Assembly (NCBI GenBank): GCA_965644315.1
Contig: CBFFRQ010000076.1
Span: 1-64,000 of the forward strand
Source: Caecitellus pseudoparvulus
Lineage: Eukaryota; Protista; Bigyra: Bicosoecida
Direction of reading: 5' to 3'
Length of the DNA: 64,000 bases
Shown here: in pieces, positions 27,401 to 31,650 of the stretch
Position numbering within the stretch: position 1 is the first letter of the stretch
Layout: every line of letters starts with the position of its first letter
The notes under the pieces: generated by a model
Database searches by the model: none
The model's input: the letters and a program-made list of their open reading frames with translations, nothing else
What the model was told of the DNA's origin: nothing
Position numbers and translations under genes: made by a program

Positions 27401-27831
27401 AGGAGGGGGGTGCTGCCAGCGACAGCAAGTCGGGCAGTTTGCCTGCTCAGCTGGGCGCCCAGCGCCACGGGCTGCTGCCCCCCCTGCCAGACATGCCTGC
27501 ACCGCCATCCCTCTCCGCCACCACCTCTTCTGCCCAGGACATCGAGAGCCTGCGGCTGTACCTTGAAGAGTACATGGGGGACGTTCCCTTCGTCAAGTCG
27601 TACGCTGCAGTGCGGGCCATGCAGGCGAGTGAGGGTGCGCCGACAGCGGCACACGAAGCCGTGGGGCGTGTGCTGAGTCGGGAGGGGGGAGGGCGCAGTG
27701 GGGCAGACACTGCCGCCCTTTCCAGTCGCTTCGGGGACCTTATTTTGCAGCTGATCGAACTGGAGGATGAGCTTGTCGCCAGGCGACGGGCCAAGGCGAC
27801 TCCAGCGGCCGCAGGGGGCAGTTCACAGTAG
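24407..27831 (+). CDS. NIMA-related (NEK) Ser/Thr kinase; introns 24607-24688, 24725-24830
   Basis: LGRGGYG, YVVKEV, CIVMEYADGGDL, HRDIKSQNVFL, KLGDFGVAK, IGTPYYLSPE; coiled-coil tail; NEK1-like C-terminal IESLRLYLEEYMG. Confidence 0.93.
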
Positions 27832-27954
27832 CATCGCAAATGTATTTTCAAGTATCATATTCGTGTTGGGCTGGAGGGGCCCGCTTACGCTGCGTGCTGC
27901 GATCTTGCCGCCTGTCGTGGTCAGCTGAGCTGGGAGGTGGGCAAATTCCGCAGC

Positions 27955-29436
27955 ATGGCTGCGCAGCATGACAGCGTGTTGTGGTGGGCTGCCACCTCGC
28001 CCAGCGGCCCGTGGATGCCCATCTGGTCCAAACGCGATGCAACGCCATCCGACATGTACGCTGAGCTCTGTGCAAAGTTCCCTGCCATGCAAGCTGACGG
28101 GGTTGACTTGACACACGCTTGGCTCGGCCGACCAGGCTCCCTTGTCGCGCTGGATTCGCCGCTGTCTGCCGCGGAGGGGAGTGGCTTCATCAGATTCGAC
28201 TGCACCACCAGTGGAAGCAGCGAGTCTGGCGCCGCCTTGCTGGCGCACACCCCGCCTCCCGTCCTGGAGCCTCACAAGATCCCCCTCGCATGCGAGGTGC
28301 TGAAGTCACTGGTGCTGGCAACTCAGACTGCGTTGCACGCAGCGACAGGGCAAGGCAGTGGTGACCCCGCGCCGGGCGCCAGCCTGCAGGACCTGCCCAG
28401 GGCCGAGCTGTTCAAGCGCGTCAAGGCTCTGGGCAGCCTCATCCAAGCCCGCAAGACTGCCTTGCAGACGCTGGCCCTTGCCGATGACTCGTCGTTGACG
28501 GCATTGGCCGCTCAAATGGCCGCATCGACATCAGCCTCTGTGCGTGCAGTGGCAGCACAGTACACACACAGCCAGGGACAGTGGAAGCACCTGCTGGCGG
28601 CCCTGGAGGGCGCGTTGGCTGCCTCTGCACCAGACTCCGCCAAGCCCCAGCTGGGCATCGGCAGTGCCATTCCCTCCGTCCCCGTGAAGGGAGAGACGCA
28701 GCTGGGGCAGCTGGCTGCAAAGCATGCTGGCGCCATACTGGTGTTCTTGCGGCACTTTGGATGACTCCCATGACGGTGCGTGGCTGTGCCAGCTCCCGCT
28801 ACCGCAGGTTTGCGCCTCAGCACCCCCTTGCCCCCCTTGCACAGAGACCACGTGGCAATGCTGGCGACCTACGCGAGCCTGTGGAAGGCACTGGACATTG
28901 CTGTGGTGGTGCTGTCGCTGTGCCCCACACCTGCAGCTGCGGCTGAGTGGGATGAGCAGGTAGGGCACCCCTTCCCTCACCTGCAGTGGGCGGAGGCCAC
29001 TGCCCCAGCTGACGCATATGCTGCCTTCGGGTTCAAGCGCTCCCTGGCTGGCGTGTGGGGAGCCCAGTCTTTGGGGTGGTATGCTCAGCAGGCAGCTGCG
29101 GGGCGGGAGCTGCAGTCCAGTCGGGGCCAGGATGTGCACCAGCTGGCAGGGGATGTCGTGGTTTCGGCGGAGGGGACGGTGGTCCTGCCGTATTACGGCC
29201 TGGACAACACCGACCGACCAGGCGTCACTACCCTGGCTTGGGCTGCTGCTGTCGCTGCCTGCAACAGCCAGCACGAGTCTCCTGCGTGGAGTGCAGCTGC
29301 GCAAACTGTCCGGCAACACTTGGCTCGCAGTGCAGCTTCCCACGGTGCACCTTCTGGAAGTGCTGTGTCAGACTCTGTGGGGGGCGCAAGTAAGAAGCCA
29401 GAAGCTGCAAACGCACCAGAAGACTGCGCCGCATGA
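27955..29436 (+). CDS. SELENOL: selenoprotein L (UxxU, AhpC/TSA-like thioredoxin fold); join(27955..28775,28845..29436); Sec at 28762-28764 and 28771-28773
   Basis: TTC TTG CGG CAC TTT GGA TGA CTC CCA TGA CG|intron|A GAC CAC reads FLRHFG-U-LP-U-RDHV; downstream YAAFGFKRS...DVHQLAGDVVV...DRP; SECIS in the 3' UTR. Confidence 0.92.
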
Positions 29437-29514
29437 CGCTTGCCTGGTAAGGGGGCAGCCAAGCGGCGCAGGGTGGGGGGTGTGGACGAGTAAAGGGGTT
29501 CGAAGGGGCTGGCA

Positions 29515-29583
29515 CCTGCACGTCACGACGCGTGGGGGGGAAAGTGTGCTCAAGCCACACTCCTCACGCCGAACAAATGCAGG
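29515..29583 (+). promoter_or_regulatory. type-2 SECIS element with ACGA core
   Basis: Helix I CCTGCA/TGCAGG; core ACGA (29525-28) and GA (29571-72); helix II GCGTGGGGG/TCCTCACGC; AAA (29541-43) 12 nt after the core; mini-stem GTGTG/CACAC. Confidence 0.85.
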
Positions 29584-29653
29584 CCGCCAAGCCCTCCTCT
29601 GCAGGCACCTCTTTCTCACACTCCCAGCCCAGCGCAAGCGACGTGTTGTGGTC

Positions 29654-31650
29654 ATGGGGGGAGGCGGGGAGCCAGAGGCCGGCAGCCGGCTCCTGCAGCG
29701 CCCATCAGAGCCAGAGCGGGGAAATCCCTCACCAGCATCGTCGAGCACGCCCTCTCCGCGACGGGGTGCCCCGAAGAAGCACCCAATCACCCTTGATGGG
29801 CCCTGGGGGACGCCCTTGTGCGCGTCGCTGTTCTACACGGTGTTTGCGTTGACTTTGCTGTATGCCAGGTGCGGAGATTGCCCACCACGCCGGGCCGTCG
29901 CAAGCTTCTTGTATCCCACTGGGGAAAGGACAGGGCCTGTTGTGGTGCATTTTCGCGGCAGAGTATCCCCACCTTTCTCCGTAGCGCATGGCGACTTGCC
30001 TCACGAATGCCTTGTCTGCACGGGCACCCGCCTTCAGCACACCTCGCTCGCTGCGTGCTGCGCAGTGGCTTGAACTACCTCCTGCTGAACCTCCTGACGC
30101 AAATGGGCGTGCGCCCGTCCCAAGCCCTGCTAGCAGTATTCCTGCCCTTTAACACGCTGCTGGGCGAGGACCCAGCTTCCCTGCTGCAAGTGCGGCAGAA
30201 CGGGTACCTGGACACGGATGGCATTCGGGGGCTGGTGTTCAGCGGAGCACTGCCATTCTTCGTGCTGGCCATTGGAGTGGAAATCGCGGGGGCAGTGCTG
30301 GTGTTTGGTCGCCGTCTGCACCGTGTGAACGACTCCATCAACAGCCTGAGCATGGGACTGGGGGACCAGTTGTGCGGCGCAGTCATCGGCTCCATGCTTG
30401 TGGGCCCATACGCCGCCATTCACTCCAAGTGCGCCTTGCTGCACGTGGACTGGACCCACAACGCGGCAGCTTGGTGGGGAGGCTTCCTGGCGGTGGACTT
30501 GGCGTACTACTGGTTCCACCGCTGCTCGCACGAAGTGTCCTTTTTGTGGGCATCGCACGCCGTCCACCACGGCAGCGAGGAGTACAACTTGACCACAGCG
30601 CTGCGCCAGAGCTTCTGGGGCAGCGCTGGCTTTGTCTTTTACTTGCCCCTTGCCTTTCTCTTCCCGCTGGAGCTGGCCCTGGCGCACAAAGTGATCAACT
30701 TGCTGTTCCAGTTTTGGATCCACACGCGCACGGTTGGCAGGTTGGGCCCCCTAGAGTGGGTGCTCAACACGCCCTCTGCGCACCGTGTGCACCACGGGCG
30801 CAACCCCTGGTGCATTGACAAGAACTTTGCCGGCACGCTCATCATCTGGGACCGCCTTTTCTGCACGTACCAGGCAGAGGAGGAGGTGGATGAGGAAATC
30901 GTGTACGGCGTCGTCCCACCCCTGGCCACGTGGCAGCCAGTGTGGGGCCAGACGCACCACTACGTGGAAATGGCACACAACATCTACCGAACACCTGGCT
31001 GCTGCAACAAGCTGCAGTTGCTGGTGCGCCCGCCGGGGTGGCAATGGGATGGCCGCAAAAACCGCTGCCGCCACTTCGCCGTGCCTCGCATCGGACACAA
31101 GGTGAACCCCCTCGCGCCGTATGACCCGCCTCTGCACCCGCTTCTTACGACGTATGCTGCTGTGCAATTCGGCACCATGCTTCTGGGCTACTTTGTCCTC
31201 GTCACCAGCGTGCCAGAATCTGGCAGCGATTCCGTGTCGCGCGGTGCTGCTGTAGCCGTTTACGCCGCCGCCACAGCGATTTTCGCACAAGGCCTGGTGT
31301 CCATCGCGGCAGTGCTGGACAGCAAGCCGTCAGCCATGCTGCAAGAGGCTGTCCGCTTGCCTTTGGCCCTGGCAGGACTGGTCGCACTGCTGGCCTGGCA
31401 GGCTGTGGCTGTGCGCGGGGATGCCTCGCCTGCGGCCACTGTCGCAGGGAGCCCCGCACTGTGGATAGTGGCTGCCGAAACACTTGCATCAGCTTGCTTC
31501 CTCCTGTGGTGGTGGTGGCGAGGCGGCTTGGCGCCGCCCACTGGCCACTACGCCAAGCTGGGCATGGAGACGAGCAGCTCGTCGCCAGCCGTGGAGCAGG
31601 AGTTGGCGGTGAAGCAGGGGCCTGCCCAGCAGACTGGGGGCGATGAGTGA
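29654..31650 (+). CDS. AGMO: alkylglycerol monooxygenase-like (fatty acid hydroxylase superfamily); intron 29869-30065
   Basis: His boxes YYWFHRCSHE, WASHAVHHGSEEYNLTTALRQ, FQFWIHT, HRVHHGRNPWCIDKNFAGTLIIWDRLF. Confidence 0.88.

Follow-up and report, generated by a model that had tools for sequence, protein, structure and literature searches.

A selenoprotein L-type gene of Caecitellus pseudoparvulus with a probable third selenocysteine codon in a C-terminal CxxU motif

Gene layout, transcription and the 3' end

The DNA analysed (the window, 64,000 nucleotides from a contig of the bicosoecid Caecitellus pseudoparvulus) carries a two-exon gene on the + strand that encodes a protein resembling selenoprotein L (SelL). 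Exon 1 spans 27955-28775 and ends ...AILVFLRHFG-TGA-CTC-CCA-TGA-CG. Its open reading frame (ORF) from the first ATG to the first selenocysteine (Sec) codon (27955-28761, + strand) encodes an N-terminal region and the start of a Prx-like fold (...AILVFLRHFG), and the following TGA CTC CCA TGA (28762-28773, + strand) specifies the active-site motif UxxU as U-L-P-U, with FLRHFG before it and R-D-H after it. A 69-nt GT..AG intron (28776-28844, + strand) interrupts the frame 2 nt past the second Sec codon. The coding part of exon 2 (28845-29424, + strand), which opens R-DHVAMLATY..., comprises the remainder of the Prx-like (AhpC-TSA_2) domain and then a linker; an alignment of orthologues showed that the domain is conserved and that the linker is low-complexity and hypervariable, with acidic residues at its end. 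Upstream ORFs of 285 aa that are orthologous to exon 1 of the window are present in L001 and L004, two of the five orthologous loci described below. The 69-nt intron was not found in orthologues L001, L004, L005 and L007, and therefore looks like a recent lineage-specific gain. The gene is single-copy, with no paralogue in the 30.6-Mb assembly.

Contigs assembled from seawater metatranscriptomes (Logan) cover the exon 1 side of the gene (27883-28774). Contigs from two runs contain the joint left by removal of the 69-nt intron, the loose end of a contig from a third run reads on into exon 2, and one contig runs unspliced across 28844-29415. Collectively, these data confirm that the SelL-like gene is transcribed and spliced. 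Coverage ends at 29415, and the interval 29416-29639, which includes the 3' end of the reading frame and the tail described below, lies outside it. The next gene encodes a fatty-acid-hydroxylase (AGMO-like) protein with its first ATG at ~29655, so the 3' UTR of the SelL-like gene can be at most ~200 nt long. A transcript contig of this neighbour begins at 29640, ~15 nt 5' of its ATG and ~57 nt past the SECIS hairpin of the SelL-like gene, and is spliced at 29868/29869 (region seen, 29640-29868); the gap between the two mRNAs must therefore be extremely short.

Exon 2 closes with GAA GAC TGC GCC GCA TGA (29419-29436), whose last four codons, TGC GCC GCA TGA (29425-29436, + strand), would form a C-terminal CxxU motif (C-A-A-U) if the apparent stop codon at 29434-29436 were read as a third Sec codon. 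An earlier note, made from the sequence of the window, had proposed exactly this, and its description of the site was confirmed throughout: the TGA lies in the stated codon context, the core of the SECIS-like hairpin is 88 nt away, and readthrough would add RLPGKGAAKRRRVGGVDE before a TAA at 29491-29493. This in-frame basic tail of 18 codons plus TAA (29437-29493, + strand) is conserved within the clade to which the window belongs. A SECIS-like hairpin with an ACGA...AAA...GA core is predicted at 29515-29583 (+ strand), its ACGA beginning at 29525, and is the only SECIS candidate before the next gene. An Rfam search of the window returned no SECIS match, and the ACGA core is non-canonical.

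The sequence around the TGA could also be read as a mis-modelled C-terminus, with GTAAG at 29447 (or GTAAGA at 29390) serving as a splice donor and the frame resuming in a downstream exon. CTG/GTAAGG does come near to a consensus donor, but the GTAAGA at 29390 is excluded by the transcript contig, which passes through it unspliced to 29415. The GTAAG at 29447 was likewise rejected: orthologues keep the frame and the tail without a GTAAG at the homologous place, and the sole acceptor that would give a reasonable intron (AG at 29583) would take out the SECIS on which UxxU depends. With the next gene beginning at ~29655 as well, this explanation is scarcely credible.

Assignment to the SelL family

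When the piece downstream of UxxU was searched alone, it matched Pfam family PF13911 (AhpC-TSA_2) with E = 1.9e-4; its 22.2 bits fall short of the 27-bit cutoff, a weak score that is explained by the absence of the N-terminal strand and helix from this piece. A profile constructed from six orthologous pieces retrieved 189 relatives from 1.84 billion representatives. This family profile matches a cluster that includes 'selenoprotein L [Biomphalaria glabrata]' with E = 7.4e-7 (1e-12 in pairwise BLASTP), and precomputed annotation assigns PF13911 to homologues P0142 and P0153. Most of the relatives start just past the active site and represent downstream gene halves that ORF callers had severed at UxxU. 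The motif itself reads G-U-L-P-U-R in L001, L004, L005, L007, L012, L013, L014 and L016 and E-U-Y-P-U-Q in the Porphyridium locus L015; bacterial Cys forms have ...RHLGCLPCR..., with GCLPCR in the place of UxxU, and one entry, in which TGA was translated as W, reads S-W-L-P-W-R. An upstream UxxU was present in every locus for which upstream sequence was read, which means that the mRNA must already decode Sec before the ribosome reaches the C-terminal TGA. The profile, BLASTP and UxxU comparisons with these relatives identify the gene product as a SelL-type protein. Over its first 270 residues Pfam gives no match, nor could any resemblance to the helical N-terminal domain of metazoan SelL be detected. 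Among near-identical strains, the N-terminal ~250 residues (27955-28700) evolve fast, with about as many non-synonymous as synonymous differences.

SelL is a textbook diselenide selenoprotein. The family has been described with two Sec, two residues apart, that are served by one SECIS (PMC3316567, PMC3473315). The window protein has the expected Prx-like/thioredoxin-fold domain of AhpC-TSA_2 type, and its two in-frame TGA codons place UxxU at the CxxC position of the fold. It departs from the description in the number of Sec, where exactly two are expected, by a third conserved in-frame TGA that completes a CxxU. It is therefore filed here as a member of a SelL-type subfamily and not as a canonical SelL. 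No mention of a third Sec in SelL was found in the searchable papers, although the original description (PNAS 2007) may contain one, and a survey of algal selenoproteomes merely lists SELENOL.

Public gene models of this family are incomplete in a recurrent way. KAA8499869.1 of Porphyridium purpureum (L015:1501-2245) and P0155/P0087 of Biomphalaria glabrata lack UxxU, which was apparently removed as an artificial intron, and the same models terminate at the third TGA. In fact, the Porphyridium gene reads ...CFLRHLE-U-YP-U-QVH... and ...VECSE-U-QVPSRRA-stop.

Conservation of the third TGA and of the frame beyond it

In this genome, TGA is used as a stop more often than either other triplet (~55-70% of ORF ends in the GC-rich window) and is by itself weak evidence for Sec, so the case rests on comparative data. 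We compared the window with 11 loci that are not all phylogenetically independent: four complete and one partial orthologues obtained by word search (57-66% identity), one near-identical strain, and five distant family members that were chosen for their C-x-x ends. The called ORFs of the five orthologues all end ...[E/D]-C-V-E, the Cys being the sole invariant residue past the hypervariable linker, and each is followed by TGA: EEECVE in L001 (tail QMPPPGAKKRRG, next stop TAG), SEDCVE in L004 (QLPPRGSKRARGT, TAG), ETECVE in L006 (QMPPRRKAARGGVSTRNE, TAG), NAECVE in L007 (QIPLRGTERLRGTGRGQ, TAA) and EEECVE in L005, where the contig ends after QMPPP and before the next stop. The window has PEDCAA, TGA, RLPGKGAAKRRRVGGVDE and TAA, and the near-identical strain (L009) differs from it in one tail residue. 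TGA also follows the ORF ends of the distant homologues, namely QEECKT in L012 (tail G, next stop TAG), SGECKS in L013 (QA, TAG), REECKT in L014 (Q, TAA), PKECNS in L016 (no tail, TAA) and HVECSE in L015 from the red alga P. purpureum (QVPSRRA, TAA).

The TGA thus stands three codons past the conserved Cys in each of the 11 other loci as it does in the window, always with exactly x-x between the two. In all 11 complete sequences the frame then closes at TAA or TAG and never at TGA. Selenoprotein genes essentially never end in TGA (PMC3473315). The comparison that the earlier note had called for, of orthologues for C-x-x-TGA and for constraint on the extension, accordingly came out in its favour, with TGA in 12 of 12 loci, neither TAA nor TAG at this position, and a conserved tail within the clade. 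The same pattern emerged from the family at large: 20 of 154 family members have a Cys at -3 relative to the called stop, as compared with 1.7% at neighbouring positions, a 7.6-fold enrichment (binomial p = 3e-12, or p = 5e-8 when the window's clade is collapsed to one), and the residue that precedes this Cys is usually Glu. P0014, P0015, P0018, P0022 and P0094 are all proteins that end C-x-x. No clear homologue with Cys in place of the third Sec was found; P0092, which has an ambiguous E-C-L-C-C, was considered and not counted, since BLASTP aligns this stretch elsewhere in the Porphyridium protein. A metagenome scan for further loci returned only L003, which was already in the set.

The nucleotides past the TGA carry a coding signature. 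The peptide of the clade begins [Q/R]-[M/L/I]-P...: the window has CGC as its first codon where each of the five orthologues has a Gln codon (CAA or CAG), the second is hydrophobic throughout (ATG, CTG, TTG or ATA), and the third is an invariant Pro written as CCT, CCC, CCA or CCG. In a hand tally from the codon table, the first three tail codons contain 2, 1 and 6 extra nucleotide states at codon positions 1, 2 and 3, a third-position periodicity that matches that of the codons preceding the TGA. U-Q recurs in the distant loci L013, L014 and L015. The base following the TGA (+4) is C in 10 of 12 sequences, and UGA-C is the weakest eukaryotic termination context.

These observations bear directly on the simplest alternative, in which translation simply terminates at the TGA, leaving a protein whose ...EDCAA end holds a conserved resolving Cys, and in which the conservation further downstream reflects RNA elements of the 3' UTR. 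Such a reading draws on the frequency of TGA as a stop triplet, on the GC-rich hairpins that lie just past the TGA in several orthologues, on the short distance between UGA and SECIS, and on the metatranscriptome contigs, which end at 29415 before the tail. It is nevertheless quite improbable, because it does not account for a TGA in the window and all 11 loci combined with a second stop that is never TGA, for third-position variation that persists across the TGA and spells one Pro with four different codons, for the invariant x-x spacing, or for U-Q in lineages that have no common 3'-UTR hairpin. Such a stop would also be expected to leak, given an mRNA that already decodes two UGAs with the same SECIS. 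Taken together, the retention of TGA in every locus read, the TAA or TAG that comes next, the coding pattern and the enrichment of Cys at -3 bear out the earlier proposal, and sequence comparison makes it very probable that the apparent SelL stop at 29434-29436 encodes a third Sec that completes a C-terminal CxxU.

Beyond the proposed Sec, the tails vary widely in length, from 0-2 residues in L012, L013, L014 and L016 to 7-18 in L015 and the window's clade, in which tails of 12-18 residues are basic. Clusters such as KRRRV, KKRR, KRAR and RRKAAR occur in these clade tails, while L007 has no NLS-type K/R cluster. The earlier note had suggested an NLS-like extension, possibly appended as a selenium-dependent isoform switch. 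A related reading holds that both products matter: partial termination at the third UGA would yield a short form ending Cys-A-A alongside a long form with Sec and the basic NLS-like tail, and selenium supply would set their ratio. Full efficiency is rare in Sec decoding, and the basic clusters of the clade would suit a targeting role, but the tail shrinks to 0-7 residues in the distant members (U-G-stop, U-Q-stop, U-QA-stop, U-stop and U-QVPSRRA-stop), mostly without a basic cluster, and L007 lacks one within the clade. An NLS-bearing isoform is therefore not the conserved function, and the basic tail is a property of the clade alone. Nor is a selenium switch plausible as the main role of the third UGA, because a shortage of selenium would halt translation first at the two UGAs of UxxU, ~200 codons upstream, which makes the third UGA a poor sensor. 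We consider this two-product reading unlikely, and a conserved third Sec in CxxU remains the preferred interpretation.

The third UGA of the window is enclosed by a GC-rich hairpin (29424-29471, + strand), which fold prediction presents as a possible element of the Sec-redefinition type. The MFE fold pairs CUGCGCCGC (29424-29432) with GCGGCGCAG (29463-29471) in a 9-bp outer stem and places the UGA in an internal-loop region, at -29.9 kcal/mol and z = -2.4 (4 of 200 shuffles fold equally well). The hairpin of the earlier note thus exists, with the UGA in its internal loop, although it is modest and its stems differ slightly from those drawn before. Hairpins directly 3' of the UGA were also predicted in L001 (z = -3.2), L006 (z = -3.4) and L012 (a 9-bp stem), and the combined z for five clade members is ~ -4.8. 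In L004, L007 and L013-L016, a hairpin near the third UGA is weak or absent, with nothing significant, so that conservation of the hairpin does not extend to the subfamily as a whole. A likeness to Sec-redefinition elements, as first suggested, consequently holds for the GC-rich clade, where the hairpin may assist recoding, and was rejected as a general feature of the subfamily, most distant members lacking it. The hairpin could also be a partial source of the richness of the tail in Pro, Gly and Arg, and part of the tail conservation in the GC-rich clade (CCC.../...GGG) could derive from the hairpin arms and not from the amino acids.

The position of the SECIS is consistent across the orthologues. 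L001, L004, L006 and L007 have canonical AUGA...AAA...GA type-2 SECIS elements 86-106 nt past the third UGA, at a position that matches the hairpin of the window, and the L001 element passes the Rfam SECIS_1 model with 38.4 bits (gathering score 35), the only orthologue element above threshold. Where the orthologues have AUGA, the same architecture holds ACGA in the window and its near-identical strains. Sequence comparison suggests that this ACGA core was born of a small deletion or rearrangement that created a new basal helix, CCUGCA/UGCAGG. The upstream GGCACCTGCACG motif of the window is also found in L006 (L006:680-716), which has ~16 extra nt before its ATGA. The minimal spacing between UGA and SECIS is 51-111 nt, and the 88 nt of the window is near that minimum. 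In the AT-rich locus L016 (L016:566-640), where TAA directly follows the TGA, the best SECIS-like core identified by eye (ATGA) lies ~34 nt past the third UGA, below that minimum; L016 either tolerates a shorter spacing or inserts Sec at this UGA with low efficiency.

Variation among strains was assessed with near-identical contigs from other samples (L008-L011), which diverge from the window at ~1.4% of positions. All three TGAs are retained in L008-L011, and the ACGA core is retained in L008-L010, the contigs that extend that far. Three near-identical contigs contain no indels or frameshifts across 27801-29700. Over the whole of exon 2, each near-identical contig has 5-6 synonymous and 2 non-synonymous differences, and in the Prx-like part nearly all differences are synonymous. 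Purifying selection and expression together support function in this ACGA-core lineage.

Proposed redox role and relation to known systems

In the model that we propose, the gene encodes a SelL-type Prx-like protein with three Sec, two in UxxU (28762-28773) and the third at the UGA of 29434-29436. The third UGA would be recoded through the same single 3'-UTR SECIS, 88 nt downstream, possibly aided by the weak UGA-C context and the local hairpin, and translation would then continue for 18 codons to the UAA. The product would carry Cys-x-x-Sec on a long, hypervariable, presumably flexible acidic linker. There, CxxU could form a selenenylsulfide that acts as a mobile second redox centre and exchanges with the UxxU diselenide, relaying electrons between UxxU and an external reductant or substrate. 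By analogy with the C-terminal Sec arm of thioredoxin reductase (TrxR) or the resolving Cys of 2-Cys peroxiredoxins, the most economical role for the CxxU arm would be to resolve or recharge the UxxU diselenide.

The other protist, metazoan and bacterial family members that were inspected end differently, which indicates that CxxU is an accessory module of one subfamily. A sister group (P0008-P0013, P0019, P0021 and P0026) ends with a C-terminal hydrophobic segment that resembles a tail anchor, followed by Arg/Lys, and has no CxxU; set against CxxU, these ends suggest that a single catalytic core can carry either of two C-terminal modules. On balance, the loci compared favour a widespread protist SelL subfamily, spanning marine protists, Porphyridium and others, that would combine a UxxU diselenide with a C-terminal CxxU selenenylsulfide arm and use one SECIS for three UGAs, the last of them ~35-105 nt upstream of it.

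A conserved third Sec in CxxU suggests a recycling route for a diselenide of very low potential, in the form of an internal selenenylsulfide arm, and would add a rare further case of Sec at two functional sites in one protein. If the model is correct, this would be the first intramolecular Sec-to-Sec relay. It would also offer a natural test of minimal UGA-SECIS spacing and of processive Sec decoding outside selenoprotein P, as a last UGA at or below the spacing thought necessary lets the rule be tested in a natural mRNA. Existing annotations and selenoprotein profiles would then cut these proteins short, and every database ORF of the subfamily that we retrieved stops at the third UGA.

Several known systems share parts of this arrangement. 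The Gly-Cys-Sec-Gly arm of TrxR likewise has Cys near Sec by the extreme C-terminus on a flexible segment, which in the window protein corresponds to the hypervariable low-complexity linker that precedes CxxU, and its presumed role is similar, a mobile selenenylsulfide moving electrons from a buried primary redox centre. However, the folds are unrelated, TrxR being a flavoprotein and the present protein Prx-like; the motif is C-x-x-U here and adjacent C-U in TrxR; the primary centre would be a diselenide in place of dithiol/FAD; and the window's clade adds a basic tail of 12-18 residues. Selenoprotein P also combines an N-terminal redox Sec motif with C-terminal Sec and requires several UGAs to be decoded per pass, but it is non-homologous and uses two SECIS elements, many C-terminal Sec and a function in selenium transport, whereas the gene described here has one candidate SECIS and one putative extra Sec in a redox-type CxxU. 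SelS, SelK and SelO also carry Sec within a few residues of their end, in a disordered C-terminal tail, and SelO ends with a CxxU-type motif, although all three belong to other families and folds and none is known to have an internal UxxU diselenide site as well. In the window, L001, L006 and L012, the stable hairpin that lies at the UGA or directly 3' of it is comparable to the SRE of SelN-type mRNAs, except that here it is neither conserved in sequence nor a defining feature.

The closest relative is SelL itself (PRXL2C-related), with which the window protein has in common the Prx-like fold, a UxxU that would be decoded with one SECIS, and the ...LRH[FL]G-U-L-P-U-R signature. The metazoan SelL proteins and bacterial Cys forms inspected end soon past the ...DRPS... 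helix without CxxU, whereas the protist subfamily has an extra long linker and a C-terminal CxxU. The three-Sec CxxU form would therefore represent a new variant of the known SelL family, which the sequences compared place in distant protist lineages.
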